Shown one piece after another: positions 20,307-52,000 of a DNA stretch of 64,000 nt. A program made the position numbers and the translations under genes. The notes under the pieces are model-generated. The model did not search any database. It had not been told where the DNA came from and saw only the letters and a program-made list of their open reading frames with translations. How positions within the stretch are numbered: the stretch's first letter is position 1; each line of letters starts with the position of its first letter. The stretch lies in contig JAHLWZ010000812.1 in NCBI GenBank assembly GCA_020536535.1, positions 55,163 through 119,162 on the forward strand, given 5' to 3'. The DNA is from Pelomyxa schiedti (lineage: Eukaryota > Protista > Evosea).

Positions 20307-21629
20307 CTATCCGCGCCATTGCACTCCTCGGAAGAATTGCTTGGCCCACTCTTTCTGCTGCTCAGTCAGTGTTGCAGGCCATAGAACTCTGAATTTCAGG
20401 TAGAGGTTTCCCTTAAACCCAGGCCTTTTGGTGATAGGCATTCCTTCACCCGGGACAACTTTGGTTGTCTCGGGGGTGATGACCTCATTGATAGGAAGAG
20501 TGACCACGTGGCCATCCAAGTGTGGGATGGTTACAACAAGTCCAGTGAGTGCATCAGCAAGGGTAATTGGAAGTGTGCAGTACAAGTCATCTCCTTCGCG
20601 TGTGAACATGTCGTGTGGTTTTTGTTTCAGCACGAAAACGATGTCCGCAGGAACGCTCCCAGGAACCTCGTCACCCTCACGCTCAAATGTCACCTTAGTA
20701 CCCTCTTTCCAGCCTGGTTTCACGTCAATTGTAAGAACCTTACTTGACTGGGACATATTCCCAGAGTTGTCCTGAGAACAGTAAGACAAACCATCTACTC
20801 AATTTAGTAATTCTCGTACCGTTATTGTCTTGGTCACTTTCAGTCTTTTGACGGCTCCTTTATACAACTCATCGAGTGAACAATGGAACTCGCGGTAAAT
20901 CTAGAAATGTTAGAAAGGACAGTGCAGAGGAAGTGAAACATACAGGCTCAGGGATGCGTGATCTGGGCTTAGTATGGCTGGGGAACGACTGTGAGAACAA
21001 CTGAGGACCTTCGTCATCATCACCACCAAAGTCCATTCCCATATTCATGCCCATACTACCAAGCCCCGACGACCCAAAGAACTCCTTGAATATCTGAGAA
21101 GAGGAGGGTTAAATGTCATTTACGCAACAAGGTGCATAAGGGTTGAAAAACACACCTCAAAAGGGTCCCTCTGTCCGCCGAATCCACCGAACCCGCCGGG
21201 TCTGCCGTTACTAGAGAACATGAATGAGGCTCCACCGGGCATTGCACCAAATCCAGGGAATGCACCACCAGCACCAGCCATGTTGGGATCAATGCCCCCC
21301 TTTAGTCCTTCCTCCCCAACTTGATCGTAAATTTGACGCTTTCGTGCGTCAGAAAGAACTTCGTAGGCTTCCCCAATCTAACCATAACGAGTGAGCACTT
21401 TTGTTGCCAGAAATTACAAAGGGGAAAAAATGCACCTCTTTGAATTTGTCTGTAGCTGCTTTTACATTGTTCGGATTTCTATCAGGGTGCCACTGACAAC
21501 GCGTTCAGCAAAAAATTAAAAAAGGAGAGTGCGAGTTACCTTGAGTGCCAATTTGCGGTACGCCTTTTTTATGTCGTTGTCGGATGCGTTTTTAGGAATA
21601 CCAAGGACGGAGTAATAATCCTTCCCCAT
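20307..21629 (-). CDS. DNAJB: Class B (Sis1/DNAJB1/4-like) J-domain co-chaperone
   Basis: [10 protein letters not shown]...[17 protein letters not shown]-rich linker, C-terminal [13 protein letters not shown]...GEGMP...GNLYLKF; no zinc finger. Confidence 0.95.
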
Positions 21630-22940: not shown

Positions 22941-24119
22941 CTATGAGTTTGTTATGGCAATGATGTCATTTATGACCTTCTCAAGGTCATTATTGTGGGT
23001 GCGTAAGAGCTGTAGATTGAGTTGCTTGTTTACATAGCCGATTGATTCAAGGTGTGTGAGCAGAGCTTCCTCTTCCGAAGTTGCAGCTGGGGCGCTGTTG
23101 AAAATAACTTCCTTCTCGGGGGGGATGTTGGTGCAAACATTAGCATTATCAGCTGTTAGATTGCAACTGGCTCCGCACATCCCACCAAAGCAATTGCCTG
23201 TCTGAGGGGTGGTACGAGGCATGCCAAACATCATCTGCATAAAGCCTGGTGACATCCTGTACACACAAAGTTAGAAACAAAAGGGGAAGGGAAGATAATT
23301 ACCAGTCGCTGGAGCAAGGCGGGCGTGAAGAGACGAACCCAGTTCCCCCGAATAACCCAGATCCCCCAGTGGCCCCAGACGGTACCATTGATCCAAGAGC
23401 CAAGTTTCTTTGGATCTTTTCTAGCAGCACTGGTATCATTGGCTTGAAGTACGGCGTATTCACAAACATTTTGATCATTGGGCCCATGGCTGCTGGCTCA
23501 ACGCCACTGCACATAGGCATGCCTAGTAGAGGGCATGCACTTGCTACTTGTTGAAGTAACTGACACAGTTCGTCAACAAGGTGGTCTGGGATAGGACCAG
23601 GGCACGCGCCTGTTGGGTTTGTTTTGTTAAAAAGAAAAGAGTGGCATTAAGAAAGGCATACTCATTGCAACGAGAATAGTTGTAATTCTTTGCAGCACAA
23701 TAGAATCCGATGGCGACGGGATTGGAAGAGTTACAGGGGTAGCCGGAGTCGGCTGTGCTGTAGTTGGTGCTGCAAACAAAGAGTGAGAACTGACTCGGTT
23801 GCATCTCGAAAAAAACAAGAAAACAAAAGGTGCATTGCATACCAGAAGGAGCCGTTTTTGGGGCAGAGTCCTCCACGATGAGCCTCAGTAGAGTACCTCC
23901 AGATGACTTGAGGAGAACGACGGCTGTGTCCAGCTCTTCCTGGGACGAAAGCCTGACTACATCGCCCTCGTCGTCAGTGTACTTGATCACGAGATCTCCC
24001 ACTGCACTCGGTAGCAATGCCTTTATGGCGGCACAGAGTGACCCAAACGTGGCTGGTTCTGCTATGCTTGTGCGTCGGATCTCGTCTTTGTATTGAACCT
24101 TGATTTGCAGGCCGGCCAT
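22941..24119 (-). CDS. PB1 + UBA domain protein (p62/NBR1-like candidate)
   Basis: PB1 domain with basic Lys (IKVQY..EIRR) and acidic OPCA motif (IKYTDDEGDVVRLSSQEEL); C-terminal UBA LTHLESIGYVNKQLNLQLLRTHNNDLEKVINDII. Confidence 0.88.
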
Positions 24120-24581
24120 GGCTCAGGGGTTTTTTGTTGTTTTGTTTTGTTTTGTTTTTCTTGTGGCTGCGTCGATTGAATGTCGTTTGTTTTCTTGTTT
24201 TTATGATGTTTTTTCTTGAGTTGGTTGGCCGTTTATATTTGATGTACCGGATCATTATGATGGCGGAAAGAGTGATCTTCTGGCCAATTGGATTTGGGCC
24301 GGTAAAAATTACCTAACACCAACCGAGTCAACCAGAGATTGGTTGTGTGATTGAGTGTGAGATCTGGTCTCCATTAACTCCAGAGTCGTTCGTTGAGAGG
24401 CTTCGGTTAAATGGCGTTAATGTGTGGCGGAATATCAACACTATTCCATGTTTCAAAGTGACTTCAGCGGTAAAGTTGCTCCGTTGGGGGTTACGGGAGT
24501 TGAGAGAAATCCAGGATTTAAACTAACCCGAAAGCAAACAAAGAACACAAAAAAAAAAAAAAAGCGTCGGTTCGGTCAACG

Positions 24582-27500
24582 ATGTCGTTTGAGCCGGCAA
24601 CCCCGAGAAGGGACGCAGTACCCAATTTGCACGACGGCGAACTATACATCTACCAGCCAGATGCGTCCTCCTCGGCCTCAGTCTCAGTCTCAGCTACACC
24701 CACAACTGCTACGGCTCAGGCTCAGGCTCAGCCGCAATACGTGTCTCAGGACCCGCAGTGGCGAGTAATCTGGGGGTTCGTGATGGGGCCTCCCATAAGT
24801 CAGTTGCTGCTGTTCCACAGCTTCAACGTGGAGACGCCGCCGTTCGCCGCGTTCCCCCTCGCCACCACGAAATTTGCCCCTTCAACCGACGTCGGTGTCA
24901 ATTACGGCGCTTTCGTGGTCGTTGAGCCCACAGGTCGTACCACCGTTCTGGCTCCTCGTCCCCAGGTTCTTTCTTTTCTTTTCTTTCTCCTTCTTCTTTT
25001 CTCCCTCTTTCCCTTCTCTGTCCCCCCCCTTTTAGGTTTTCTGTTTTCTTTTCTTTTTTTTTCCAAATTGTAATTATTGCCATCAGTTTCAACAGAGTTC
25101 TAGCCACCACCATCACCACCACCACACAGCAGAAACTAATACGGCGACTACCACTTGGCTGAACTTTCTTGCTCCTGCAACACCTGTACCATCAGCTGTG
25201 ACTCCGGTATAGGGAAAAAAAAATTAGCGAGTTCACTCTTAATGAGATGGCAGGGTGCCTCTGACCAGAGACATGAACAAAATACTGTCATCGATGTTCA
25301 GCTTTGTGCCCGTAAACTTCCAAAGATGGACTCTGGCCCCCTTGCCAAAAGTGGTATGCTGTGTTTCCTCCTCTGATCCCTGTTAAAATGTGTTAGACCC
25401 CTTCTTTGTCCTAATGAATGATGACACAAAGCAAATTATTCATCAATCCGAGGTCATAAAAAGTACTTTAGACCCTGACTGGGTGACTTTCCGCCTGTGG
25501 CTCCATCATGCTGGAGGTGCTGGCGGAATTCTTCGTATTGATCTATTTGATGTGTGTCTCCCTTTTATAAATGTTTATCTCTGATTTGGCGCAAGTGGGA
25601 CAAGGATGGTACACATGACTTCATGGGTTACGCCACTTTTGAGGTTCAGTTCGTCTCTAGACAAGCCATATCTTATTTATACAGGTACGGAGTTTGCTCG
25701 ATTCTAGTAAGACTATTGCTTTGAAGTCCAAGCACACAAAACACGCAATCATAAAAGTAGTGAGTGCCAAACCAAGCCGAGTCCCTGTTCCTCCTGAGCC
25801 TATTGCATACACGTATGCTTGGATAGGCCGCTTTCTTTACTAATCTGCATGATGGAGACAGTTTCCGATTTGCCGCCACTAATTTGGACAAGAAAGATGG
25901 CCCCCTCGGGAAATCAGACCCCTTTTTCACTATTTCTGTTCAGTCATACACGGTTTTTACAAGTGAAGTAGTTCCAAAGAATTTGGACCCAACTTGGCAT
26001 GACTTTGTTCTTGATTTACGTGAACTTCCTGGTTGCACTGGTACGCTACATCCAACGATAAAAATAGTAAGCCTTGTTTGCATAGGCTGGAACACCGAGG
26101 TTACAATCACTGTGTATGATTATGACAACAATGGGGACAACCAAGAGATTGGCCATTTCTCAACTCCACTTTCCATGTTACTGTTCCCTGGGTTCCCCTT
26201 TCCTCTTATAAACTCCAGTAAGAAGTACGCCTTGAAGACCAACATCCTTCAGCATTTTAAAAAACCTGTAGAAGTAAACCAGGGTATAACAACTCCGGCT
26301 ATTTCATGTCCGCCTCTGCCCAGCCAGCACCCCCACAAGATGCTATGTTTGTTGCTGACCCTGTTTCCTACTTATTCAAGTGGAGTGCAAAATGTCCCTC
26401 ACTTCTAAAAAGACCAGGTAGCCCTAGTAAAAGATTCTGTGGTGCTTACAATGACAAGACCCTTTTCTTGTTGTTTCCACTCGAAATGCTACTATTTATC
26501 GCTCTCCAACCATAAGAAACACCACTGCACCGTCTTGGTCTGCTTTTCAGCTTATGGCTGGATTTTGGAATTACTGCCCTAGAGAGCCATTGACAGTACC
26601 AACTCACTCCATATACATTCTCTCAAAGTTTAACACCAGTTTGATGTATATGACTGGGACAGTAATGGGAGTCACTCTATCATTGGGACGGCAACTTTGG
26701 ATACATGGTCATTGCGGAGGTGCCCAAACAAGAACTTCCAAATAAAAGCAGGAAGTAAAATGTAATAACAACTTCCCCATTAAACTACTGATCTTTTGCG
26801 TAGCACTGGGACCCTTGTCTGTGAATCAATGACACCTCAGACCACCTACACACCACCCTATGACATTACAGCACGAGCCTTTACTATCAAGGCTGCAGGA
26901 GGAAGATTATCGATCCCTGGTTCTCTGGTACAGCACATGATTTACAATGTTTGTTTATATGTTTAGGAACGGGCTGACCCCTTTTTTGACATTCGAGTAG
27001 CAGGAAGGCTTATTTATAGATCTGAACATGCCCACAATAACAATAACCCGAGCTGGGAGGCATTCACTGTTAACATGACTCAGATAGGGGGATTTATGAT
27101 CCCAATGGAAATAGTATTAACAAAAAAGGAAAAACCAACCTAATACATTTAGTCTGTTTTGGATTGGGAAAGCAAAGGAAACCATAGATTGATTGGGCAA
27201 TATCGTACAACACTAAATGAACTTCTCGGCGGGCCATTCCAATACCCTCTTGTTGTGAAGTATGACATTTTAGCATACTTGCTACCTCTAAGTTCGCTCC
27301 AGATCCAGTCTTGGCCCCAGTGCACCCTCTTCTGTCATAAAATACAACATACCCAATTCAAATGGTGTCTTCAGTGTTGAAAGTATTCAGGTACTTCTTA
27401 CTCTTGTGCTGAAGCCAATCTAAAGGTTTCCTCCAGCCCGCCCCAGAAAAAACTCTCCTTGAATCAGCTTACGCATTGGAGCTGCACGTGAGCTGTGCAA

Positions 27501-30500
27501 ATCTTGTTAAAGCACTTGGGCTAGTGGGCTCTTGTGGTGTGTTCTTTCACCAATCTTGATTTCCAAGGCAACCTACTGCTAGATGCATTTTTTACTGTTA
27601 TGACCACCATTGATGGCACTGATGCAACCAGTTACGTTTGTTCTTCTTCTTTCCCAGTCTCATAAGCATTCAGTTTACAAATCAGAAGTTGTACCTACCA
27701 ATTTGAATCCTGGTCCGTAGAGTTTATTGTTTTCTCAATTTCTTGTCTTATTTCTCCAAGTTTTTAAGCCATTCAGAGTACCTCTTGACCGAGGTCTTGA
27801 TGGACCCATCAGGATTCACGTTTATGACTATAACAAAGATGGTATACCATTTGTTACTTTTTTTTTTTTTTTTTTGTCAACTACCATCTGATTATAGGTG
27901 ATCACGGCTATCTTGGGGAAGTATGTTGCACTCCACGAGAGTTTACCTTCAGTTGGTTCTCCACTGCAATAAAAAAAGGGGATTCATCCTCTGGAAGCTT
28001 TATAGTGAACAAGTTTGTTGTATTGGATGCAACTAAACGTGTCCCATTAGTTGTTCCTCCTGCTGTGAGGTTCTCTTTTTCTTTTTTTTTTCCTGGTATT
28101 TACTCCTTCTCTTTTTCAGGTTCCAGTGTTATGCCAATAAACTTCCTGTTATGGATGTGTCTACAATGTCTATTGATCCCTTCTTTTGTGTGAAAATACA
28201 CAATGCTACTGTTTATCGAAGTGAATACGTTCCTAAGGTATTTTCTAAAGTCATACCACCTTCAGTAAACATTTCTCGAGAACCAAGCGCCCAGATGGAA
28301 GGAATGTGTTATCCCTCTCTCCACATTGACAGGCCCCAATGACTACCTCGAAATTGGTACAATTCCTGGTGTCCATCCAATAAACTCAAAGTGAAAAAAA
28401 AAAGAGGTGTATGACTTCGATAAAGATGGCACACATGATTGCATTGGCAAAGTTCGTGCAAGTTGGGCTGACCTCCAGTGGAGTTGGTTTGAAGAGGGCA
28501 TCAAATCTGGCGCTACCATGTGCACCTACAACAAATTTATAATTTAGTTTTCACATCATTCAACAGAAATGGTGCTTTTGGGATAAAAGAAATCGTGCCC
28601 TGCGCCCTCCCTTCAGAGGCTTCCATTAAAAGTGTCACTATGACATGCAATATCACTAAACTCGAGAGAAGTGACAATCCACTTTTAAAAACTGGTTTTC
28701 TTTCCTTTTTTTTGCAATGACTTCTCTCACTTTTTTGTAGATGCCTTTTTTGTAGTATGGTTGGATGTGAAAGATACAACAACCAACCGAATTTCCAAAA
28801 TGAAAGGTTCTACTTGCTTACTTATGAGCTGTACTTAATCGGAATGTCTATCACAGTTTATAAATCGGAGGTTGTGAAGCAGAACTTAGCACCTCAGTTT
28901 GAACCGTTTACCATTCCTCTTGATTGTGGTCTGGACACACAGATTCAGTTCCAAGTTTTTGATTGGGTATCAGCTTTGCTTTCTCGAAAATTAAACCAAC
29001 ACAGTTCAGGATGCTGATGGGGCCCATGATACCCTTGGCGGTTTCACTCTTACAGCTCGGGACCTTACGTTTTCATGGTTTTCTTCTGCAATACACAAGT
29101 CAGATGGCGGAAGTGCTGGAGGCTTTAATATAAACAAGCTCACTCTACAGGATACCGTTGTAAAAATTCTTACTCCCGAGCTTCCTCCTGCAGTCAGGTA
29201 AAATAATGTTCTTTGGTGAGAGGTTTCTGTGGCGTCCTTACCGCACTTTAGAATGTGCATTTATGCCAATAAACTTCCTGTCATGGATCCAGGAACTTTA
29301 TCTGCTGACCCATTCTTTGTGATAAGGAAATTTGATCCTGCAGTTGGAGCTGAGATTACCCTTTATAGGTTTCGTCCGGCAAACAACAACAAAGACCTGG
29401 TTTCTCGTAAAACTATTTTAACGTAAGGCACAGATCTGAAGTTCACAAGCACACTCTGTCACCAAAGTGGGACACTTTCTGCCTTCCCCTGGCACTTTTC
29501 AAGGATTGCAATGACCCCATCGAAGTAAAGGTTTGCTTAAACCCAACAAAATATCAAGTTTGTAACCACATTTAAAGGTCTTTGATTGGGACAAAGGTTT
29601 TTTTTAAAAAGAAATCAAATTTATCCATCTCACTCCTGTTATGTAAGACGGAACACATGATCTCATTGGAACCCATAAGATTCTCTTCCGAGAACTCCAA
29701 TGGTCTTGGTATGAGGAAGGACTAACAAATGATGGTTCCAAGTAAATTTCTTTCTTCTTGCTGCAACCAAACCTTTAAACTCTCGCATCATCAGCCAAGG
29801 TTGCATTGGGGTCAAACATGTGGAACCAATTCCTCCCCTTGCTATTCCTCCTGTTCCTCCTGGGTTGCGGGTCTGGTGTAGCGCCGCTAAACTGGCTAGG
29901 ATGGATGGCCCGGCAGGCAGCTCTGACCCGTTCTTTGTGGTTTCAGCACGACCACCTGGTTTTCCTCATGATATCATTCTCTACAGGTAACACTATTCAC
30001 TCCATTTTTATGCCTAAATTCCCAAGATCTGAGGTAATTAAAAAATGCCTGACCCCAGTGTGGGATGCGTTTGATTTGAGTGTGGAGGCTATTGGTGGAA
30101 TTGATAAATTTTTCACGATTTCTGTTTATGATTTTGACTATGATGGAGGGCATGATGTGCTTACTTCCTTTCGTTTTTTTGCAGTCATAACAAAAGTTTA
30201 GGTAATTGGTGAACTGAAAACCACGCTCCGTGAGTTGGGGTTTGGTATGTTTTATGTAACTTGAATCAACAAGTAAACTCTTCAACAGGGCAATACCAGC
30301 AAGCTCTGTACTCTGGAAGCAGTTCCCGTGGATCATTTTCGTTCGATAGGGTAGAAGCAATCTCCCATGTCCCCCTTCCCTCCTGGGCACCAGCATACAA
30401 AGTTTTTGCTGCTGGTTACAAAATTGCCCGTCTAGATTATAGCGCCACTGGAGCTCAACCGTCTGGTATCGTACATGCAATTAGCCTTTCAATTAAGTTT

Positions 30501-33500
30501 TCTATCAGATCCTTTCTTTGTGGTTCGCGTGGTACCACCTGGTTATGATAAAGAAATAACTATTTATAGATCACCTGTCATTAAGTTTGTCACCTTTTCT
30601 GCTTTTCGTTACCAAACAATTTCTTACAGAAAATGTGATAATCCTAAGTGGGGCTACTTTATTTTAGATATGTCCCTTATTGGAGGTAAGAGCTCTTTTC
30701 CTTACTCTCCCATTGACTCTTTAAGGGTTGGATACCCCTTTCAAAATTTCTGTCATGGTTTTTCCACTCTCTTGTTGTAAAATATGTGATTATTTTAGGA
30801 TTGGGATGCTGATGGTGGACATGATCTCGTTGGAGAGTGCAAAATCACAATGCGAGAGTGGTGGTATAAATTCCTTATCAATTCAAGCATACACTCAGTT
30901 AAAAAAGTTTTGGCCCATACCGAAAGGCACTCATCAACCCAGACAAACTTGGACTGTAGTTTTCCACTATACTTGTTCTGTACGTTTTAAACCTTCTTAC
31001 AGGCCTGGGTACGACAGCTCAGGGGCATTTTCATGTGAAGAGATTATACCTGTTTTCGAACCTGTTGAAAAAAGGCCTTTACCAGTGGCCATTGAAGTTG
31101 TAGCTTCTTCCTTTTTCCTTTCTCATAAAGAAAAAATCTAGGTCAGTGCCTCTGCCCAGAAGTTAGAGCGAAAGGATGGGCCTCTTGGAAAAAGTGACCC
31201 TTTCTTTGTTGTTTCTGCTCAACCACCTGGCTTTCATCATGAAATTACCTTGTATAGATCAGAAGTGGTGATGAAAAACTTAAACCCTGGTTTATACCTC
31301 AAGCTTTTTTTTTAAAGTTCACGTTGATTTAGTTTGGAAGCCTTTCATGTTGAACCTTTCTGATATTGGTGGCGTGGATTCTCCTTTTACGATCACTGTT
31401 TATGACTGGGACGCTGGTATGTAAGGCTTGTTTTCCTTCTCTCTTATCGTTGTAAGATGGTGCACATGACTTAATTGGCCGACTGACAACTACCTACCGA
31501 GAGTGGATGTTTGGTCCATACCAACAAGCCTTGGTTAATCCATCCAAAAAGAACTTGTAAGTTAGGGCACCCTTCTTGTATCTCAATTTTTTCCCATTCT
31601 TAGGCCTGGGTATGAGAGTTCTGGTGCTTTTTCTGTCGACAATATAATGTTGGTCCCACAAGAGTATCGCAAATTCATTCCTGCCGCATTTCAAATAAGT
31701 CCAAGTGCTCAAAAACTAGTTGCAAAGGATATTGATGGAACATCAGGTGACCCCCTAAAAAATTATATCATAGACTAAACCACCCCCCATCAGACCCCTT
31801 CTTTGAAATCAAAGCCAAACCTCCGGGATTCACTCATCCAATTACTATTTACCGCTCCGAAGTTGTTAAGTCAAATCTCAAGCCCGTATGGAAACCATTC
31901 ATCATGAATTTGGTGGATATAACGGATCTGGATACCGAGTTTACTGTTTATATCTATGATTGGGATAAAGGTACTCATTGGTTTTCGCCTTCCTTCCTCT
32001 GAAATAAAAGCAAGATGGAGGACACGAACTGATTGGGTCAGCAAATACAATTATGAGAGAATGGATGTTTTTCCCTTACCAGTTTGCAGTCAGGTCATCG
32101 TCATCATCCAGGTATGAAAACGCCCAATGCACTCAAGGTTGGCTCAGCTTTACTAGGTCATGTGGCGCATTCTCTGTTGATTTTATGCAACCCATGCCTC
32201 CCCAATTAGTACCCTCCATTCCTCCTGCTTTCTTGGTCAAGACCAGTGCACAAAAATTAGCAATTCGAGATGTTTCTATGTCATCAGGTTTGAGACTTAT
32301 CATTTTCTGTACCCCTCATTGAAGTAGATCCTTTCTTTGAAATTCTCGTGACTCCTCCAAGCATGGGAACCCCAATTTTAATGCATAGGTCAAACGTTGT
32401 CATGAAGTCACTGAAACCAGACTGGGAACCATTCGAATTCAACCTGTCAATGGTAGGGGGTTTAGATTCTCCATTTATTGTCAACGTTTACGATTGGGTA
32501 ATTCTGCCTTACGGTTTTCTTCTCTCTGATAAGCAATCCAGGATAGAGATGGAGGTCACGACCTCATAGGAACTCTGACAACAACTTTGCGGTAGAAATT
32601 TCCTATCTTATGTTTGTTGATATTGATTTATCTCGAATAGAGAGTGGACTTTTGGACCTTACCAGCAAGCTCTTCGGCTTGGAGGGAGCTCCAGTCAAGG
32701 GGCTTTTTCTGTGGATGAAATTACACCACTCAGTTCTTCACAAATGAAGCCAATAGCAATTGCTTACGAAATAAGAACGTCTGTAGACAAGATGCCCCTT
32801 ACCACTGGTTTCAAGTAAGTTCCAACGAACATTTCTCACATGCTGTTCAGGAGCTACATTCCTTGAAGTGAAAGCACAACCATTTGGATTTGATTTCCCA
32901 ATTACAATGCATCGGAGCGAGGTTGTCAAGGATGGCAAGCATGCCCATTGGGACCCATTTGTTCTCAATGTCTTTGGTTTGTCTCTCGAGTCTTTTTTTT
33001 TTTATTTTATTTTCTGACCGGGTTCAGATATAAGGGGTCTGGATACAATATTTACACTCTCTGTTTGGGAACACCATACTGATGGCTCCCATAAAAAGTT
33101 GGGATCGTTGCACACAACACTTCGTACTTGGACTTTTGGACCGTTCCGTGAGTGTATAAGATCTGGGTCTTCTGAAGTTGGTGCTTTGTGTGTGGATGAA
33201 GTTCGACCTCTCGCAGAGAGAGTTGATAGACCCTTGTTTATTGCCTACCGTGTTCACCCATTTGGCGCAAAGCTAGCAAGAAAAGACTTGTCAGGGAAAT
33301 CAGGTATGCGTTTGAGTCTTGACACAGTTTAACTTCTCTTAGATCCGTTCTTTGAGATTCGTGTAAAATCAACTGCCAATCCCCACAAGAAATACATTAC
33401 TATCTATAGAAGTGAAGGTTAACTTTTTTTTCCCCCTGGTCGGAAATCTGATGTAGTGCCTACTCCACAGTTGTAATGAATAATCTCAACCCGTCGTGGA

Positions 33501-36500
33501 AGCCGTTTGAACTTTCCACACTAGCAGTTGGAGGATTTGACACTCCATTTGAAATCGCTGTCTTCGACTGGGATGCTGTAAATCTCCAGGTTACTTTTTC
33601 TTCCTCTAACTTTTTTGAAGGATGGTGGTCATGACTTAATTGGGAGGACCCATGTGACACTTCGTGATTGGTTATTTGGTGAATACAGGACTGAACTAAT
33701 TTCTGACAGTTCTACAGTTCTTACGTACATCTCCTGCTCTTCAACTCATTTTCACCTTGTTGGCAGTCAAGGGTCTTTTGGTGTTACACAGATGGATGGT
33801 TTGACCAGTACCGACGTTAAACCTGTTATACCTGCCTGTTTTGCTCGTGTCGGTGTTGCAAAACTTGCACCCACATGTCGAAGTATTCTCCTCCCCTTTT
33901 GTGTCAGCCCTGATAGATAACAGAACCCTTCTTTGAAATGTGGGTGAAAAAGAAATTATACTATAGAAGTAAACCAAGTAAATCGAAAAACGGAGCTGCT
34001 TCTTGGGATTCCTTCCCTATTAACATAGAGGACTTGCATGACATTGATTCCTTCTTCAAAATCAAGTACTTCCACCTCACATTAGGGATGATTTGTCTTA
34101 AATTCTGTTTTCAACAGAGTGAGGGATTTCTCTGAGAAAGGTGAACATACACACATAGGAAGTCTTCAAACAACCTTCCGCGACTGGACATTTGGTGAGT
34201 TCCGATTTGGCCTAACAAAGAAGCACCAGCTGACAGATAGGTTTAACCATTTTTTTAATCTCATTTGGTTTTTTTTGAAGTCACGTGTCTCTTCTTCAGT
34301 TCCGCAGCCTTCTGCATTGAAGCCATTGAACCAAGAAACGGCCGCCTATATCCATTTACTTTGGATGGTTTACCTACCGACTATGTCCCTCCTGCTTTTA
34401 CACTTTCGTGTTCTGGTGTCAGCCTTGACAGGAAAGATGTGACTGGGAAGTCAGGTGATGCCAAAACACCCTATCCTCTTTAGTCTGATCTGTACCCAGA
34501 TCCGTTCTTCAAAATTATTGGAACACCTTCAGGATTCAGTTCCCCAATTACGTTGTACAGGTTTCTACATATAATATTTTCAATTGCTTAAATGGCATAA
34601 CAGGTCTGAAGTGATAAGAAATACATTGAAACCGAAGTGGGCACCGTGTAACATCAACACAGACTGGGTACTTGGTCTTGACGGTTCATTTACCGTTTCA
34701 GTGCTTGATTGGGATGCCGGTTTGCAATTCATTCTTTGTGCCAATTTAACTACTATAGATGGAGATCACGATGAAATTGGCACCGCTAAAGTCACACTTA
34801 GAGATATAATTCACAATGGTTTCTCGTTTCCTCTCAAGTATGAACCTCTCTCGATTCTAGGGAATGACGAAATTTCAGAGGCCCAAAGCTTGGCTTAAAT
34901 TCAGGTGCGTTCAAGATTGATAAACCAGTTGGGCTTGCACAGAAAGTGGAATCAGTTCAATCAGCTCCCGCCTTCCAGATCCAAATGTCTGCACGAAAGT
35001 TGCCTACAATGGATGGAATACGGCTAAAGTCTGGTACCGAACTGACTCGCTTATTTGCAAGTTTAACCTGAATGCAGATCCGTTCTTCACGATAAAAGCG
35101 CAACCAAGTGGCTACTCTAAGGAAATTGTGGTCTACCGGTCCGAAGTTATACCAAACACACTGGAACCTGCCTGGAAGCCTTTCGTAATTGGCACGGCAG
35201 ATATTCCATTTGATTCCACCTTTGAAATCTCCGTGTTTGATGCCGATCCAGGTTCTTTCAGTTGAAACCTTCGGATTACAAAGTAACAGGATTGAACAGA
35301 TGGAGGACACGATCTCATTGGCCAGTTGAGCACAACTCTGAGAGAAATTTCGTTTGGAAATGTTCAAATGGCTTTACATAAGCACCTTCGTGTTGGAAGG
35401 TTTACCCAGTTTCTTTTTTTTTTCCAGCACTAATGCAAGAAGTCGTGGATGCGTATCATTTGATGTTGTGCAGCCTTTGCCCTCATTTACCAGACCAGTT
35501 TTCGCCGAGGCATACACCTTCAGCATGAAAGCAGCCAAGTTGAATTCTTCAGTTTCAGTAGCTCCTGTTACTTGTAGTTTCGATCGTTGTACTTCTTACA
35601 CTTATCACTCTATCCAGCTGCTTTCTTCGAAATTACCAGTTGCCCAAAAAATAGCCGCACAGCACTTGTCATGTATAGGAGCCTCCCTGTTGCCTCTCCA
35701 AAGTTCTCTTGGAGTGATTTCACACTCTCAGTTGCCCAATTAGGGGATCCAGACACTCCGTTCACTATCACTGTGTACTCCTTTAAGGAGAATGGTGCCC
35801 ACCAGTTTGTCGGGGATGTGACCACGAACTTGAGGGAATGTGCTTTGTTTGGCCCCTATTTAATTGGATTGCACGATCCCTCTCTGCTTAACTTGTAAGT
35901 TACCACGGTTCTGATAACTGGCTGAAGTGTTTCTTCCAGGTTGAAGCCAACACGACCAGGAACTTTGCTCATAGAGTCTGTCTCTCCCGCACCGTTGGCC
36001 AATGTTCCCGCAATGCCGGTCGCAATTCAACTCGATTGTTCTGGTTTAGGATTTGAGAATAAGGACGCTGCTGGTTTAATCCAGTCTGGTCAGTTCTTAC
36101 TTCGTTTTCTACATTCCGACCTCTCTTTTAGACCCATTCTTTGAAGTTCGGCGACTCAAAGGAGTTTTACTTTATCGATCTGAAATGATAAAGAACAACT
36201 CTAACCCTGTTTGGAGGCAGTTCACTCTTAGGTATCCTTCTGATACAAGGGTACTCCCATTTACAATTAACAGCCATCAATTTTCTGGAGGCGTGGACTC
36301 TCCCCTCGAGATCATTGCCTATGATTGGGTAGGGTACTTCCTTTCTAGAAAGAATGTACCCTAATTTTTCTTTCAGGACAAGGATGGGCACCATGACCTT
36401 ATCGGCAGTTTTGTTACAACGTACCGTGACCTGGCTTTGGGTTCTCTGACTCGACCTTTGAAAAACGAAAATAAAGTTTTGAGGTATCGGATGCTCCTGT

Positions 36501-39389
36501 CACTTCTTCTCATATTTTCGCTACTTCAGTATTGGGTATAAAAGTTCTGGTGGCTTTAACTTCCGGGTTACACCACTCCCAACATACACGGAGGTTTCTC
36601 TGAGCATGCAAGCCTTTAAACTTTGTGCTGCTGCAGCCAAATTGATTTTCCCCCTTACAGACCTGAAAAAAGGTTCCTGATCCGCATTGTCTTTCGTCTA
36701 CTTAACTTTCCCAGTTCCGTTCTTCGAAGTTCGTGTTGGAGCTAAAGGCAAAAAACGCTTAATTTACCGTTCCGGTAGGAAAAAAAAACCACCCAACATA
36801 TTTCGTGTTTAATGGTTTCGCAGCTGTAGCCCAGGAAAACATGGAATGGGCACCTTTCACCCTAAATATTAATGATGTTGGTGGCATTGATGGATACCTC
36901 CACATATGGTACAAGCAAAACCCTAAATACGATTCTTCTTTTTTAAAAAAATTAAAGGGTGTGGAACCAATCTCCAAAGGGAGACCACTTGCTCATAGGC
37001 AAACTAAAAACTACTCTGCGCGAAATGACTTTTGGTTTACCGTACTCAATGAGATTAGTGAACAAGGAACACCAAAAGCTTAGGTATTTTTTCGTTCTTT
37101 TCCATTCTCTTATTACTTTAAAAAATAGACCTGGTTACACCAGTTCTGGTGCGTTCATCATTACACTAGCAGATCCCCTTCCATCTCCTGTTCCGTTCTC
37201 TCTCCCTCCCGCCTTGCGAATCACCCCAAGTGGAATTTCCCTCAAGAAGAGCGGCATAGTAGAGCGTAGGTTTGGTATGGGAAAAACCAAAGAAAGATAA
37301 CAACAGACTAACTTTTCACAGCACCATTCTTTGAGATAATGGCACCTCTGGGATCTAGCCAAATTGGATTTGCACTTGTTTACCGCAGCAAAGTCTATGG
37401 GCTTGAGGATTCCTCAGCCGGGCCAGATTCTGTGCCCCAGTGGCAGCCGTTTGAATTGAGTCCGGAGAGAGTTGGAGGATGGGATACAGAGTTCTTTATC
37501 AACTGTTATCATTGGGATAGTGTACGTTCCTTTACATTTATTTATTGCTCATGGTTTTTCTTGTAGGATGGAACGCATGATTTGATTGGTAAAACGCACA
37601 CCACACTTCGGGAGCTTCTGTTTGGCCCGTACACACTATGCCTTGAACCAGAAGACCGAACCCCACTTCAGAGCAAGTCCGCTGGGGGCCTGCAGCTTGC
37701 GGCAGAATTCCTTCCAGTGGCATCTCCTTTTATCATACCACCTGGTGTTGTCATAACGTGGGTAGCTCCTCTCATTTCTTAAACTTACTCCTCGAGAAGT
37801 GTGAATGGACTTAAACTCGATATTGGAAAAGGGGTGTGGTTTGAAATGTGGCTGATAGGTCCTGGCGTACAAGAGACTATAATCTACCGGTTTTTAGACT
37901 TAACCTCACCCGTAGTTCTTATTTTTTCTAGATCAGAGTCTGTGGATGGCCACTCTCCTCAATGGAGACCTTCAGAGATTTGGCCAGCACAGTGGCTTAC
38001 TATGGATAATCTATGGAGATGCATTTTCAATGTGCCCTCCCTCCAAGGTTCTTTTAATATCTGAATCATTTCTCCAGATTCATGTGTACGGATGGAATCA
38101 CAACCAAATTGAGCATGTAGGAAGCTCTATGTGTAGCTATCAGGACTTTTTATTTGGCTCTTGGACCGGCACTCTAATCAATAAGCGCAAGAAGAAACAG
38201 TGAGATTCCTCTGTAACATTGTAGTAATAATGTACACCCCAGCGGAATTGGATACAAGAATTCTGGAGGAATCCAATTCCATGTAACTACTCCCACAAGA
38301 CCAATGCCAACCCTCAGCAACGCATGTGAATATGCAGTTACATTTGACGTTCACCACGTTTCGAAAGACTCACAAGGTGCACCCCCTCCCGTTTTGGCTC
38401 GTTTCCCTTACTTCACAAATGAAACCAGCCATGGCCTTGTCTGTATGCGGAAAATCAACAAATGGAAAGGAGGTTGTACTTTGCTCGGAGCCCTGTCCCA
38501 CACCCCTTGGACAGTGCACTGTTATCGTACCGTTCGAATCAGTTTCTGGTCCCTCTTCAAAGATATCAGTGAAACTGTCTCTCACAACAAATACACACTG
38601 GATACACGATAAAATCTGCACACTTTCATTCAAAACGTCTTTGTTGCAGCTGGCTCTCCCTGGCTTCTCGGCTTCAGTAAAGATTCCTCGAAAGCTTTTG
38701 AAGATTGCCAATCCTCTCGAACCCAAGTATACATCCCCCGCCACCAACCAGCCTTCTCTGATGCCCTTAATTTTCTATCATCCAGGCCTGCACTTGCAAC
38801 TGTATCTGTGGTGTCCTGTGTACCCCGGAGTGTGGCAATTCCGGGCTACGCCTTTACACTCCAAGCTTCAGGCCTCCCTCGGGCTGATGCTCTCACCGAT
38901 TTATCAGGTCCGATTTTCCCACTGTCACATCAGAACTCTAATTATAACACAAAGACCCATTCGTGCAAGTCAAGGCAGAAAAGGGACAAGTGATTCACAC
39001 AAGTGAAGTGCACAACCAGGACCTCAACCCCAAATTCGCGCCGTTTGTTGTTGACATTGCGGCTGTCGGGGGCATGGATGCAATTCTCACATTCAATGTG
39101 ATGGACTATGATCCAAGTGGCACCCCAGATTTCCTCGGTTCTTGCTCAATGTGCCTGAGAAGGATGATTCAACTGCAGCAGCTTCCTCTATGGAATTCTG
39201 TCAAGGCTGCTAGGTATTTACACTACTACACAGAACGAATTCTGGATAAGCCACTCACTAATTGATTTTAGGTTGACTGACTACAATGGATCCGGGTATC
39301 TCAAGGTGATTGCCGCACAACCAGCAACCAACCTCCCACCACTTCCTGCACCTCATGCTTTCTACTGTCCTCAGCCTCTCAGTTCATAA
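24582..39389 (+). CDS. Giant protein: N-terminal PH-like domain + about 25 tandem copine-type C2 domains
   Basis: A recurring unit K-L-x2-D-x3-4-SDPFF...YRSEV.K..L.P.W..F...GG.D....VYDWD.DG.HDLIG....TLRE...G repeats every ~500-680 bp from ~25280 to ~39330. ATG at 24582, TAA at 39387-39389, many short introns. Confidence 0.88.
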
Positions 39390-39460
39390 CCACTTGGGTT
39401 TTGTTTTTGGAAGAGAAGAAATTGAATAAATCTATTCAACAAACCAAAATGTTTCGAATT

Positions 39461-41068
39461 TTAGCTTCCCTGAGGTGGAGATGGTAGTGTTGTGTGAATA
39501 AGTGAAGCAAAGCTTGTGGTTACTGGCTCGGAGCTTGCAGTGGTGCTACTTGTGTCAGTGTGTTTGGAATCCTTCATTTCCAAGCACTTGTGTTTGGTTG
39601 AGAGGTCTTGGACCTCCAAAACGCGGGCCCATTTGGCCCCTGGGGGAGGTTCTTCCATTACCTCGTAAACTACATTCAGTGTGTCAACGCAAACTCCATA
39701 GACACACATAGAGTGCTTAGAGCGCATGTGTGCAGACCGCGGGTCCAGCCGTATCACCTCCGTGATTGCACTCATGGCTTCTTCTGAGCCGGAGTAGAAC
39801 CGCAAGTGCGGGGCAGCGGTCTGGAGTTGTAATGTTGCATTTGGGGTCCATTCCACTCGGCTGAAATCAGCGAAGTCTGCTGAGCCACCGCCTGCAACCC
39901 AGCCGGGTATTCTGACACTGGATTGTGGGGCGCTATCGGCTGCGGGTATGTAGGGTTTTATATCCAGTATGGGGGTTCCGTTAACGAGGTCTATCCCGCT
40001 CAGGCGGAGTGAACCTTCATCAAAGTTGACGCTGTCAATGGCGGCAAGAGTCAACCCGATGCAGTTGGGTCTGTGGGGTGATCTTGTTGCCAATGTGCCG
40101 AGCTTGTGGATTCGTCCACCCCCAATTCCTTTTCCACCTAGTTTTGGGGGAGACACCACAGGGTGATAACTTGTGTTGACATTTGCGTGGAAAGCAAACA
40201 CCACCCAAATGTGTGAGAACGAATCAATTCCTCTCAGAGCATTCTTTGGGTCAATTCTGGGATCCAGGAAAATCGTAGCTTTGGCGTGTGGTGCCAGTCC
40301 GCCCTGCCTTGGGCAGCCATTCAGCTCAGGGAATATTGATGAAACAATTCCAATTGAGGTAAATGAGAAAGTTTGTGTCTTATGAGGGTGAGGATGCACT
40401 TTTGGGGTCTTTTTAGGTTTTTGATTACCAGAGGGTTGAGTGCTACTTCTGTGTTAACGTTATTCTACACTCTTAGCTTGAAAAATAATAAGATAACTTT
40501 GGTTGGTCTTTGATTCTATTATCAATATTGATGCATTTTTCCCCCTCCCACAATACCTCTGTGCTCTTTCCGTAATTTTCAGTCCTGTCTGCGTTGATGC
40601 GACATTTTCTCCGATTTGCTCCTGCTGTGGTGACTGTCTTTGGTGGTCAGGAGTCGTTGCCTGCTCTTGTCGAGGCGAAATTACGCTGGCTACCGCGGCG
40701 TCGTTTGTCTGCCGCTGCGTCCCACAATCGCGTTCGCCACCTTCTCGCGCTCCTCTGGCCTCCTCGCTCCTTGCTGTGCCTTGGACGCTGCCCGAGCAGG
40801 CGCCGCCTCCGACGTGCGCCGCAGGGGGCGTCAGCGATTCTGTAGGCGCCGCCGAGAGCGCGGAGGTGCACGTCGCGCAGCGGGCCTGCGCGGCCGACAG
40901 GTGGCGGTCCAGCTGCCGCGAGAGACCAAGGACCAGCCGCGAGATCTCCCCCGCCCGCGCCCTCTGCCGCGCGTCCGCCCGCAGCGCCTCGCACACCGCG
41001 CCCGTCGCGCCCGCCAGTGCCTCCATGGCCTCTCGGGCCTTGCCCACCGCACCAAGTAGCGCCGACAT
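39461..41068 (-). CDS. TRMO: TsaA/TrmO-family tRNA (m6t6A37) methyltransferase with an N-terminal coiled-coil-like extension
   Basis: IGIVSSIFPELNGCPRQG, GIDSFSHIWVVFAFH, GTLATRSPHRPNCIGLT, GIDLVNGTPILDIKPYIP, DPRS. Confidence 0.93.
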
Positions 41069-46644: not shown

Positions 46645-48260
46645 TTAGAAGTAGACATTATGAAATCCAATGTTGGCAAGCTGTGGGGCACCTGCAGCTA
46701 ATTGGAAGATGCCCCCAGTCACCAGAGGTGAGGAGTGTGGGGATGGTGGGATGTTTGACAAACTTGACATGCCCAGAGCTGTACAGAGAAGACTGGTTGT
46801 CTGGATTTCATTTTGAATTTCAGGCAACTTGACAACAAAGCAACCAGCTTGCTGTTGGGTCAATTCCTTGTTTTGATTGGGCACAAGCTTGTTTAGAATT
46901 ACTCCTGAAGTCACAGTACAGAGTGTTGTCAGCTTCTCCTTCCAGAACTGGTGAACCCCCTTTCTGGAGACCTGTTCCTGCTCAGCCCACAGTTGTGTTG
47001 GTTGATTTGCAGGAATCACGACTGTGCCAAAGATTGGTGGTCCTCTAGAGGTTTCTCTCTGTGCAATAGCTTCTTCAATGGGGTCAATTACAGAATTTGA
47101 CCTCAGAGGTGCCTCTTTGTTGATTGGCCAAAGACCAGTCCTTGCCCAAGCCACTTTGATTAAGTCAGGAACAAAAGCATACTCTAATCCCCTAGTGCAA
47201 GCAAGGAGCATTTGTATTCTATGTAGGGCAGTGCCTTCATCTCTCTTAGGTTTGTAGAAAGCCCTAAGTTTTTGCTTTAATACTCCATTGGGGGCTAGAT
47301 CCAATGGTTGTAGAATGTGAGAGGTATTTGGTGGTAAAATGAGGAGGTGTATCTGTGCTTTATACAGCTCAGCTCTAACTGCCTCATAGTTTCTACTTTT
47401 GTGGCCATCAGCAATCAACACTGCAGGAGCCACCCAACCAAGTTGTTTTCTTCGTAGCTCCACTTGGGGAATGAAGATTTGTTTGACCCAATCCAGGAAA
47501 ATGATGTTAGTGATCCAACCTGAGCTATTCCCAGCCCAGGCATATTGATTCTGCAAAGATGCTGGGAGCCACGGTAAATTCTTCAGATCAAAGATAAACA
47601 ATGGTGGTAAATGGCCTCCAGCAGCATCAATTGTCATCAAACAGGTGATGTGTCTGTCAATTGGTGCTGCTGACACAATAGGTCACCATAAGCAATGACT
47701 TGGGCTTTGCAAACACCAGCAGAGACAAAGGTCTCATCTGTATTAAAAGTCATTTCAGGGAGAAAATGGTGCTCATTGTATAAGTTTTCCCAATTCTGTA
47801 TACATCCTGTGATTTCCTCTTTGAAAACCACCAGTGTGGGAGTGAGCTCAAAAGAGAGAAGTGATGGAAAAGAAACCTTCTCTTTTTCAATGATCCTGGG
47901 AGTTCTTTTGTGTAACATTGCATGTCGTTTTAAGTAGCTGCACCACCATGTTCTACTGAATTTTGGAAGCCGCTTGGCAAGATTGTGTTGTGGAGTTTGC
48001 TTCCAAAAATCTTGAAGAAGAGAAGAAGCCTCAGCCAGTGTGTAATATTTCTTTGTTGCAGAGGTGCTTTGAAAGACTTTGACTGAGTCTGTGTCTTCTT
48101 CTGTTGACAAGGATGGAGGACGACCTCTTTTTGTGCTGTTGACCTTGCCATCTGTATGACCTCTAAATGTACTGCGTGCAACACCAGTAACCTCTCGAAC
48201 AATTGACTCAGTCTTGATTAGAAGTAGAGGACTTCCGCTTTTAGTCACCGACCAAAACAA
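46645..48260 (-). mobile_element. pogo/Tc5 (CENP-B-like, DDE_1) DNA transposon transposase, frameshifted near 47680; element termini not identified
   Basis: HTH-psq GVARSTFRGH, linker RGRPPSLS, HTH FSRTWWCSYLKRH; catalytic motifs FNTDET, LIADGHKSR and LPPNTSHILQPLDL. The two ORFs are in different frames. Confidence 0.92.
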
Positions 48261-49071
48261 GAATGTTGATGTTTCAACGAAAAAAAGATGGTGGGATTAA
48301 AAACCCTGGTGGATTTTGGTGAGAGTGCTCTACACTTTATTGAGTTGTACAAGTTTTGTCATGTTGCGCATTCTATTGGGTGCACAGCACCCATGGGTGT
48401 TGGGTGTAGGAACAATCACACAAATTGTTTTTCTGTTGCCAACCACCCCAATACTTACTGTGCTGTTAGCTTCTGTGGGCTCGAGAATAAGTCCCACAGA
48501 GGAAGAAAACGAGTGAGAGTGAAGAGAATAAAGAGTGTTCTCTTGTTTGTTTGGTTGTTGTTGTTGTAAGGGGGTAAAAAGGGAGTGTGTAAAATCTCGC
48601 AGAGCGGTTGTGCGATTGGGTTAAAAGGCTGCGATGTTCAAATGGATTCTCGGACAAGTGTGCATGTGATCAAAACCGCCTGCCACGTTGTTGTTGCTGT
48701 ATTTGTGCGCCCAGCTGCGCTGTGCGCTGATCATTACCTTCGCTGTCTCATTCTGGTAATAGTCCAGATTCGGCTCAGTCCTCAGTCTCTCCAATCATCC
48801 CGCTAAAGTGCGCCAGGACTTCAGAGCCTTGTGAGCAAGGCCAAGTTCGTGTACTTTGTGGAAGTACACAGTGCAGTTACGTGTGTTAGTGTGGCAGTAT
48901 GTCCTGTGGGTGCCTTTGTGGGGGCTTGTTGCCTACATTGGCCAAAGCGAGGCAACAAACGGCTGAATAAAATAATCAACAGACCGGAACGCCGTCATTT
49001 TCGTTATCGTCGCTCTGTATCGGCGGTATGGTGTTTTTTTTATTCAGCCATTTATCTGTTGTCTTCTGTTA

Positions 49072-52000
49072 ATGAGAACGAGTGGAAGACAACGGAGCAG
49101 ACGGGCAGTACGTGGGCGAGGGCCAACAGTCATCAGCGCCGCTGCGCGTGCATCTGCAGTTGGCTCGGAGGCTAACACTGAAGTGCCCTCACCAAAGCAA
49201 GCTCCCGAGCTCATGACTGTGGGGCTGGCTGAGGCCTGCGGTCTCTTTCGAGAGTACCCTCTGGAGGTTTTCTCGCGTGCTTCACAGCTGATTACGGAGC
49301 CACAAGGCACCCTGGGGTTTGTGGTTACCATCTTTGGAGCACCAGGTTTTTTTATGTCTTGTCTGCTTTGAGTACAAGACAGAGAATCCACTGTGTTATA
49401 TTCTCTTCTGGCAGCTAACTGACACCTTCAGGATCTGGGAAAAGAACTGTACTTAACCTAATACATAAGAAAGCCAACAGGGAATTCTGCACTTTATCTG
49501 GTTCTCCAAATAGCAAGTTCGCCAAAATGGTCATGGTCATTGAAGGCTTGTTTTCTTTCAATAAAAACAAATGTAACCTCTGCTAAACAGAAGAGAATAT
49601 AACACAGTGGATTCTCTGTCTTTTAGGGAAAATAATACTGTCAAGGTATAGTACCTTTTTTTATTTACTTGTTTTATATACCTCAACCACTCCTGAATTT
49701 AAACCAGTACCCCAGCGACAGCAATGCTAAATATGGATCTCAATATTGCAGTAGCAAAGGCCGATATGGAGTGTAGCCTTACAGTGGGCACCCTAGAAAA
49801 CAGACTTCAGGGTGGACAAAAAGTTCCACTTACACTCTATTTTGAAGATTTTGACTTAATATTGGAGGTTTTTCCTCTCCACACCTGTATGCTTAGCTTA
49901 CACACTACCATAAAAAAAAACAAAAAGCAAACCCCAGGTAAAAGCCAACGTTTACTGAAAGCCCTACAGGAGGTGTTACTTCTATTAAACAACTTGGGTG
50001 TTTCAGTGGTATTCACAGGGAGTAACAAGCTACTCCTTCCGGAGATTGGAACTCATTGGAAAGTGTACAATGCATCACAGCTTGTATGCTCTACCTAAGT
50101 TAGCTTGCACTCATGTAAACTGAAGGTTTCTAATATCACATTTGCTGAAGCATATCATATTCTGCAGAAGAATGCCCCGAAAGTAGTATCTGGTAACAAA
50201 CAGGAAGTAGGGAAGGTACCATCTATATCAGCCCAAGGTCCACTCAGAAAACAAATTTTGTAAATTTCAGATCGCCAGCCTTATCAGAGGTCCAATTGTA
50301 ATTTGCTCTGAGTTTCTATCACAGTAAGTAAAGAAGGGGGTTAGAGAATGTTAAAATATGATGCAGATTAACCACTAGTAGCATATCACCTCGTAGTTGT
50401 CTAAGGAATACATTCAATCACATCTTAAAGATGTGTGTGCTTTTGCATATGCTCTTCAAGGAAAATTTTAATTTTTTTATTTTCCTCTTTCAGGTACCAG
50501 CACTACGAGTGCACTGAGAACCTAAGCAAGTCCTTTTTAAAGGAATTTACAATACTCTTATCACACCCAAGTAACATCAAATACCACAATAAGCATGGCT
50601 TGATATACAAAATAATAAGGCACATGAACCCTCAATGTAAGGAAACGGCACTTTGTTTGGTTCTGACCCTTAGTTCAGGTTTTGACACAATCTTTACCTA
50701 TGGTATGACACTTAACAAAACTGGGCTCATTGAGGTGGCCTTTGAGTGTGAAAACCAGGATATACTGATTGTGCCTGATCCTTGTCCTTGTGCACTCTCG
50801 GCTATGTGCCAGACTCTCATAAATAGCCCAGTGGTAGGGAGAGACAATTGGCTAACCTAACACTACTTACTAAGGTCCAGTCCATTCTGGATTCTTCCTG
50901 TGGACATAATACAGCCACATTTGCTGGAGAATTTAAAAGACAAATTGCTTTGGACCTGGCGAAGTTCTGGTCCCCAATTCAGTTTTACATTTTTGATCAA
51001 ACTGGCTACCACTGTGACTTGAGTTCATACCAATACCATCCTCTTTTATGTACTGATATTGAACTGGATAGACCTGCAATATGCTTCCGCTACATATGAA
51101 AAAGATAGGTTGTACACTCTTGACACACTGGTGAATAACCGTGTGGGAACTATCGAATGTGACACCCAGCATGAGAGTTTTGACTGGATCTACTATGGCA
51201 TTAGAGATGATTCGCACTCAGGAAAGCCCAATAATATAATGGGTCTGTCCCATTCCTCATAGTTACATATTGTGACTTCCATTCAACAGTTGTATGCCGA
51301 GTGACAAGCATTACTGAACAACACTTACTATGTGCCGCATGTTTGGACTTCTTCAGATCACAAAATAGAAAAAACACATCTGGTAAGCATATCTACACCA
51401 GAAGTCAAATTGACCAGTTTTAGGAATCTTTGCCTTCTTAAGTGAGCACCCATTTTCAACAAATGCTGATATTGATATTTTAATAAACAACAAACTGGAT
51501 GTAAGTCAAGACCTTTGTTTTGTCATTACTTAGTGCCTGATAGGCGGATGAAATGGCCAACCATCAAAAAAAATTCTTCAAAATCATATCTGGTCCTGAG
51601 GTATTCTCAAGCAGTAGAGAAGATGTGCTCTTTGCAATTGAAAAAGGTGCGGAGCATGGGTTATCTGAATTTCGTCACATAAACCAAAACAAAAACCATG
51701 TACAGAGGAAAAACCCATGTGTGATGCATCCACCCTAACACCTGATGCTACTGAAATTGATTCTTTCCGAGCCAACTTCCCAAACTTAGTTGAAGCCCTG
51801 GGGTGGGGCCCTGAGTCAATATTTCTGGCAACACATGAAGTGCTTTTCAAGTCTCACAGAGAGTTTTTGGCACTTGCCATGCCCATTTCAGAGGAGAACA
51901 GACCCATGGATATGTACATGAGCTTTGTTTGCCACTTGTCAGACTTTCAAGTAATTTTCCACTAGTTTTGAAGTTCAGTGCATTGATAACACACCAGATA

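Follow-up and report, generated by a model that had tools for sequence, protein, structure and literature searches.

A giant array of copine-type C2 domains encoded by a single gene of Pelomyxa schiedti

The gene, its transcript and its domains

A window of 64,000 nucleotides (nt) from the genome of the anaerobic amoeba Pelomyxa schiedti was analysed (contig JAHLWZ010000812.1, positions 55,163 to 119,162 of the forward strand), and all coordinates below are counted from its first letter. Positions 24582-39389 of the + strand are one expressed gene for one protein, with 87 exons and a product of ~3,600 amino acids (aa) and 398 kDa. Once 86 GT-AG introns are removed (39-65 nt in size, with a first intron of 121 nt), the frame is open from the ATG at 24582 to the TAA at 39389, and 78 of the 86 modelled introns are needed to hold it open. 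An earlier reading of the letters alone, hereafter the original prediction, had proposed one gene for a soluble giant protein at this place. The open spliced frame, with no internal stop left in it, and the public annotation described below agree with that proposal, as does a maximal hydropathy of 1.71 (19-residue window), with no transmembrane segment found in the protein.

The gene model is a spliced-path model with nine hand corrections, and its scoring was trained on the same gene. With this scoring the gene reached +938 and shuffled sequence about -500, while no spliced path got to the end on the reverse strand of the interval, which served as control. The protein deposited at NCBI as 'hypothetical protein Pelo_11264' (3,594 aa) differs from the model in 5 residues only, all of them at 3 tandem acceptors.

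A public contig that lacks introns (ENA ERZ12420489, locus L010) is identical to the exons over 1,941 nt, between 36970 and 39437. It splices out 11 introns across units 21-25 of the array, ten of them exactly as first modelled; the acceptor of the eleventh lies 3 nt downstream of the first model and was adopted in the final one. An AATAAA at 39425..39430 (+), which may be the polyadenylation signal, precedes the end of the contig at 39437. The contig also carries a 1-nt deletion at 37840 which would truncate the frame. Since the genomic reading at this position is conserved in the paralogue Pelo_9897 (contig C790), an error in the contig or a variant allele is the probable cause of the deletion. 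Spliced contigs were found for the paralogue on contig C800 as well.

The protein consists mainly of 25 C2 units, which tile residues 176-3588 nearly gap-free. The units share a mean pairwise identity of 29% (range 10-55), and all of them are of one alignable type and not a C2A plus C2B pair. The best match of unit 11 is the C2B domain of the Arabidopsis copine BON1 (E value 4e-17, the next family following at 8e-7), against which it scores 48.5 bits, versus 14.9 against C2A. Fifteen units carry a phase-1 intron at the identical motif, as expected from the tandem duplication of an intron-bearing unit. Of the 25 motif starts listed in the original prediction, 24 are 0-4 nt away from a + strand motif of the (D)PFF type; the remaining one, 38388, falls inside the intron 38377-38428, and the degenerate unit 24 resumes at 38429.

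C2 is the only Pfam domain above cut-off in the array protein. A weak FG-GAP match was rejected, being below cut-off and placed on a C2 Ca2+ loop. SMP was not found in the protein with Pfam, and NCBIfam gave no match. The copine vWA domain (PF07002) is absent from the protein and from all four contigs that carry such arrays. The description of these units as copine-type, with neither vWA domain nor membrane anchor, thus holds, given the BON1 C2B match and the absence of vWA from the contig. Genome-wide, P. schiedti has many copine-type vWA matches, all of them off the four array contigs.

Five acidic positions, which we take to be the Ca2+ ligands from the synaptotagmin/copine motif, are complete in 14 of the 25 units (1, 6-13, 15, 17, 18, 20, and 25). 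Within units 1-5 (25284..28052, +), the first has all five ligands and the other four have 2-4; units 1-2 are modelled by AlphaFold with a predicted local distance difference test (pLDDT) score >90. Units 6-13 (28059..32755, +) form a block of eight with five acidic ligands in each. Among units 14-20 (32759..36608, +), 15, 17, 18, and 20 keep the full set and 14, 16, and 19 have lost most of it, and Pelo_9897 is alike in this part. Units 21-23 (36609..38330, +) are also ligand-poor, with splicing from 36970 onward seen in the public contig. Unit 24 (38331..38837, +) has lost most ligands too and is strongly degenerate, without a Pfam match; a degenerate penultimate unit is also present in the Pelomyxa paralogues and in Pyxidicula. 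Unit 25, followed by a short Pro-rich tail (38841..39368, +), matches Pfam C2, has five acidic ligands and no transmembrane helix. The ligand pattern along the array is largely common to Pelo_9897, and some of the ligand-poor units are net basic. Judging by the conserved ligands, the array units probably bind Ca2+ and, in a Ca2+-dependent way, phospholipid.

The array is preceded by a putative degenerate PH-like region with two low-complexity inserts (24618..25179, +, exons 1-2). The motifs quoted for it in the original prediction are present and follow the order of PH landmarks, and in the alignment they are placed where homologues carry a clear PH domain. The PH fold itself was unconfirmed by Pfam (whole protein and part), hhalign, the ESM atlas and AlphaFold. 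Against a profile of seven PH sequences, the corresponding region of Pelo_9897 beats 1000 shuffles, and that of Pelo_11264 is marginal (19/1000). A search for short PH homologues found nothing. Motif order, the position shared with homologues, and the shuffle result for Pelo_9897 speak weakly for a PH domain. The targeting by phosphoinositides, proposed earlier for this region, is doubtful: the region is degenerate, what we take to be the basic phosphoinositide-binding motif around strands 1-2 is missing from it on inspection of the alignment and present in a metagenome homologue, and two Pelomyxa paralogues have no PH and start directly at unit 1.

A family of arrays in Pelomyxa and more distant eukaryotes

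Three further arrays are found in the P. schiedti genome, which gives a family of four members. Pelo_9897 carries a PH-like head followed by 25 units, and each of these finds its best match in the unit of the same number in Pelo_11264. The two proteins are 57.7% identical in amino acids with four-fold sites at 31% (saturated), which is an indication of purifying selection, and 73 of the 86 introns are common to both. Pelo_10634 (C800) also has 25 units. The fourth array, on contig C650, has ~27 units in a rough model extending from about 14.3 to 29.6 kb on the contig; it appears to be under-annotated, as NCBI Pelo_8290 (1,210 aa) spans only part of it. In the unit tree, the C800 and C650 arrays have multiplied unit 12 and lack units 19-21, yet they arrive at a similar final count.

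Relatives outside Pelomyxa were found with a profile of the exon pieces over 1.84 billion proteins. The top match is an open reading frame (ORF) from a Trinity assembly of Pyxidicula operculata (EP01125_P016135), whose isoform of 4,016 aa consists of a Pfam PH domain (E value 1e-9) and 27 units. A eukaryotic contig from a JGI metagenome encodes PH and 27 detected units, with room for a degenerate 28th. The search of other protists that had been suggested for this architecture recovered it in Pyxidicula (27 units) and in a metagenome eukaryote (28). Shorter arrays occur in Carpediemonas (KAG9393611.1, a weak PH and about 16 units), Thecamonas (AMSG_10679, PH and about 12 units), and Rhizamoeba (EP01130_P008101, 12 units, PH not seen). 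The PH domain is intact in Thecamonas and at the metagenome locus, as in Pyxidicula. A relative in Protostelium combines an EF-hand, 6 units, and LIM, and proteins of the (C1)-PH plus four C2 type are present in Physarum, Flabellula, and Pyxidicula; the Physarum protein used as query returned itself only.

Two isoforms are assembled for Pyxidicula, one of them without PH and the first three units, which parallels the PH-less Pelomyxa paralogues. Between two C2 units of the Pyxidicula homologue, residues 2945-3024 form an insert of 80 residues that is missing in Pelomyxa; it includes a hydrophobic stretch and might contact a membrane. More divergent giant multi-C2 proteins were seen in Anaeramoeba (3,901 aa), Luapelamoeba (with CH domains), Phalansterium, and Cyanophora.

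In the unit tree, units 1-3 and the last unit of Pelomyxa cluster with their positional counterparts in Pyxidicula. The support is moderate, with values of 84-95 in the Shimodaira-Hasegawa-like approximate likelihood ratio test (no bootstrap). The metagenome protein joins these positional groups for unit 3 and for the third-from-last unit. The grouping of the end units suggests descent from a single old ancestor of giant size, the middle units of the array having been turned over. Deep unit trees, built on about 140 columns without bootstrap, are poorly resolved, and an order of events is claimed within Pelomyxa only.

That the architecture is unique to this locus is doubtful, since the gene belongs to a family of four in Pelomyxa, the same architecture is found in other eukaryotes, and the protein was already annotated as hypothetical. 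A published description of a C2 architecture with 25-28 units, or of an orthologue, was not found in the open-access literature (most subscription journals lay outside this scope), in agreement with the original prediction, which knew of no characterised protein of this design. The family is apparently undescribed, though Pelo_11264 is deposited as a hypothetical protein; its PH plus poly-C2 relatives are likewise database entries for which no study was found.

Predicted packing and possible action on membranes

AlphaFold places four consecutive units (10-13) in one fixed arrangement, with a pLDDT of 94 and a predicted template modelling (pTM) score of 0.89. Each modelled unit is an eight-stranded type II C2 domain, and the linkers measure 10-11 residues. 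For single domains, the best solved relative by fold is BON1 C2B (Z 17.6, root mean square deviation (rmsd) 3.5). The arrangement of the four units had no match among solved multi-C2 proteins (TM score about 0.2, rmsd about 20), and an atlas search with the four-unit model returned nothing above a TM score of 0.37. In four proteins of two genera, with 92 junctions in all, the span from the conserved glycine of the last strand to the conserved leucine of the next unit measures exactly 31 residues at 49 junctions and 30-34 at 80.

A type II C2 domain has its two termini at the same side, opposite the Ca2+ loops. Together with linkers of 10-11 residues this topology favours side-by-side packing, and according to the models a rigid side-by-side array is likelier than a long flexible tether. 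Its length is estimated at roughly 60-75 nm if the array is straight, and less if it is helical or closed.

The reading proposed here, with a probability of about 0.5, is that Ca2+ recruits a rigid multivalent C2 array to anionic membranes, which it would coat, stiffen, or closely appose. It draws on the copines, whose C2B domain drives Ca2+-dependent membrane association (PMC10968396), and, by analogy, on the ferlins, whose C2 domains pack into a ring for Ca2+-dependent membrane engagement (PMC12264198). In detail, the soluble cytosolic chain would have its 25 copine-C2B-type domains packed side by side as a rigid strip or solenoid. On a rise in cytosolic Ca2+, ~14 units would bind it through their five acidic residues and dock on anionic phospholipid, and the entire array would land on the membrane with high avidity. 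Once landed, it could form a coat or patch by which membranes (the plasma membrane or vacuoles) are stiffened, bent, or brought into close apposition. The ligand-less units may serve as spacers or as surfaces that bind proteins or lipids, and the PH-like head would be a dispensable accessory in Pelomyxa. A soluble and highly cooperative Ca2+-triggered coat of this kind would bear on membrane repair and remodelling in wall-less amoebae, and the array offers a modular scaffold for the study of multivalent C2-lipid binding.

Several points weigh against the proposed coat. Eleven of the 25 units are short of the full ligand set. The confidence that AlphaFold assigns can be too high for alignments of repeats, and the one behind the model consisted of only 38 rows of the family's own repeats. 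The orientation of the Ca2+ loops is inferred, and the array may be straight, helical, or closed. Transcript support is checkable for the last 2.5 kb of the gene only, and its first 12 kb rest on the model, the public annotation, and homology.

Among the other explanations, a protein scaffold or a cortical or cytoskeletal element survives best, in which the rigid array would bind actin, microtubules, or other partners with Ca2+ as modulator. The eleven ligand-poor units have been kept, mostly at matching positions in the closest paralogue and some of them net basic, and the related Protostelium array carries EF-hand and LIM domains. In copines, too, C2 domains take part in protein interactions (PMC10968396), and Dictyostelium copine A is reported to bind actin filaments (PMC6679068). 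The complete Ca2+/lipid site, however, is kept by most units across very distant lineages, and the scaffold is considered unlikely. A ciliary role of the giant form is also unlikely, as arcellinid testate amoebae have no flagella.

The long-range flexible tether, in which PH holds one membrane and the distal C2 units bridge a distance of about 100 nm to a second one, was among the functions offered in the original prediction and now seems decidedly doubtful. The large size of the protein and its N-terminal PH, intact in Pyxidicula, Thecamonas, and the metagenome locus, are consistent with such a function, and so is a unit number which stays at 25-28 like a ruler. However, type II termini lying on one side (with the strand order taken from the model) and such short linkers preclude an end-to-end string; the near-constant junctions and the pTM of 0.89 point in the same direction. 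Moreover, units competent for Ca2+ occur all along the chain, with a block in its centre, instead of being massed at its far end, and two paralogues have no PH at all.

It is very improbable that the protein is a many-site Ca2+ buffer or sensor without a structural part to play at membranes. Each chain does offer ~14 complete sites, but a chain of 400 kDa is costly, and the fixed linker geometry and the position-specific and ligand-less units would be superfluous for buffering. Finally, several tandem short copine-like genes or a decaying repeat, to which the deletion in the environmental transcript contig and the short Pelo_8290 could point, are hardly credible, because the units follow each other at 127-145 aa with no room for intergenic DNA, one spliced contig spans five consecutive units, Pyxidicula has a single transcript ORF of 4,016 aa, and Pelo_9897 shares the unit order one to one, 73 of 86 introns, and the genomic reading at 37840.

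To our knowledge, no characterised multi-C2 protein goes beyond about seven C2 domains, and those of large size carry a membrane anchor. Copines (CPNE1-9, Arabidopsis BON1, Dictyostelium CpnA-F) resemble Pelo_11264 in being soluble, with type II C2 domains and acidic Ca2+ ligands, and their C2B is nearest to its units in sequence and fold. Unlike them, Pelo_11264 has 25 C2B-like units in place of C2A and C2B, no vWA, and a PH-like head, and its C2-C2 arrangement differs from that of BON1 (rmsd about 20). The ferlins (dysferlin, myoferlin, otoferlin) are likewise large multi-C2 proteins, a functional analogy only; Pelo_11264 has no C-terminal transmembrane helix, Fer, or DysF, is made of one homogeneous C2 type in a number several times theirs, and is packed differently (TM score 0.17-0.18). 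Extended synaptotagmins, tricalbins, and MCTPs likewise have several C2 domains in tandem, some of which bind Ca2+ and others not, but Pelo_11264 lacks SMP and a membrane anchor and matches them poorly in sequence and structure. The PH plus poly-C2 relatives (Pyxidicula, the metagenome protein, Carpediemonas, Thecamonas, and others) have the same unit type, 4 to 28 units, and in most cases an N-terminal PH which, unlike that of Pelo_11264, is recognisable by Pfam (weakly in Carpediemonas). Pelo_11264 thus fails the defining features of copines, ferlins, and the E-Syt/MCTP group, yet it probably works like them.

What sets the family apart is that it combines 25-28 anchor-free C2 units with a conserved linker and a C2-C2 packing predicted to be new, and that it is kept across Archamoebae and testate amoebae. 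Tentatively, and as the less probable part of the interpretation, this old amoebozoan family may build a rigid solenoid or ring whose length is under selection; a single chain would then be a membrane coat or ruler switched by Ca2+. The idea of a selected length comes from the count, which stays at 25-28 despite internal gains and losses of units. If this is true, the C2 fold would be put to a new quaternary use here.

Neighbouring features of the window

A bacterial promoter scan of the window was set aside as inapplicable to a eukaryote. On the upstream side, a divergent gene with a PB1 domain (23547-24122, -) starts about 460 nt from the C2 gene, and a DnaJ C-terminal domain is located at 20310-20798 (-). 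Downstream, the convergent and intron-free gene of a TrmO tRNA methyltransferase, with both N- and C-terminal domains (39464-40453, -), ends about 70 nt from the stop codon of the C2 gene.

A transposase-like ORF of the DDE_1 (pogo/Tc5) type is located at 46648-48296 (-; Pfam E value 2e-17), and an ORF upstream overlaps it in a different frame; clear terminal inverted repeats on both sides of it were not found. An inverted repeat at 49373-49625 (38 nt, 97% complementary, arms 177 nt apart) could be a small element resembling a miniature inverted-repeat transposable element. Further domains of the window are ankyrin repeats at 54043-54489 (+), a glycosyl hydrolase of family 3 at 58687-59220 (-), and MORN repeats at 63277-63999 (-).

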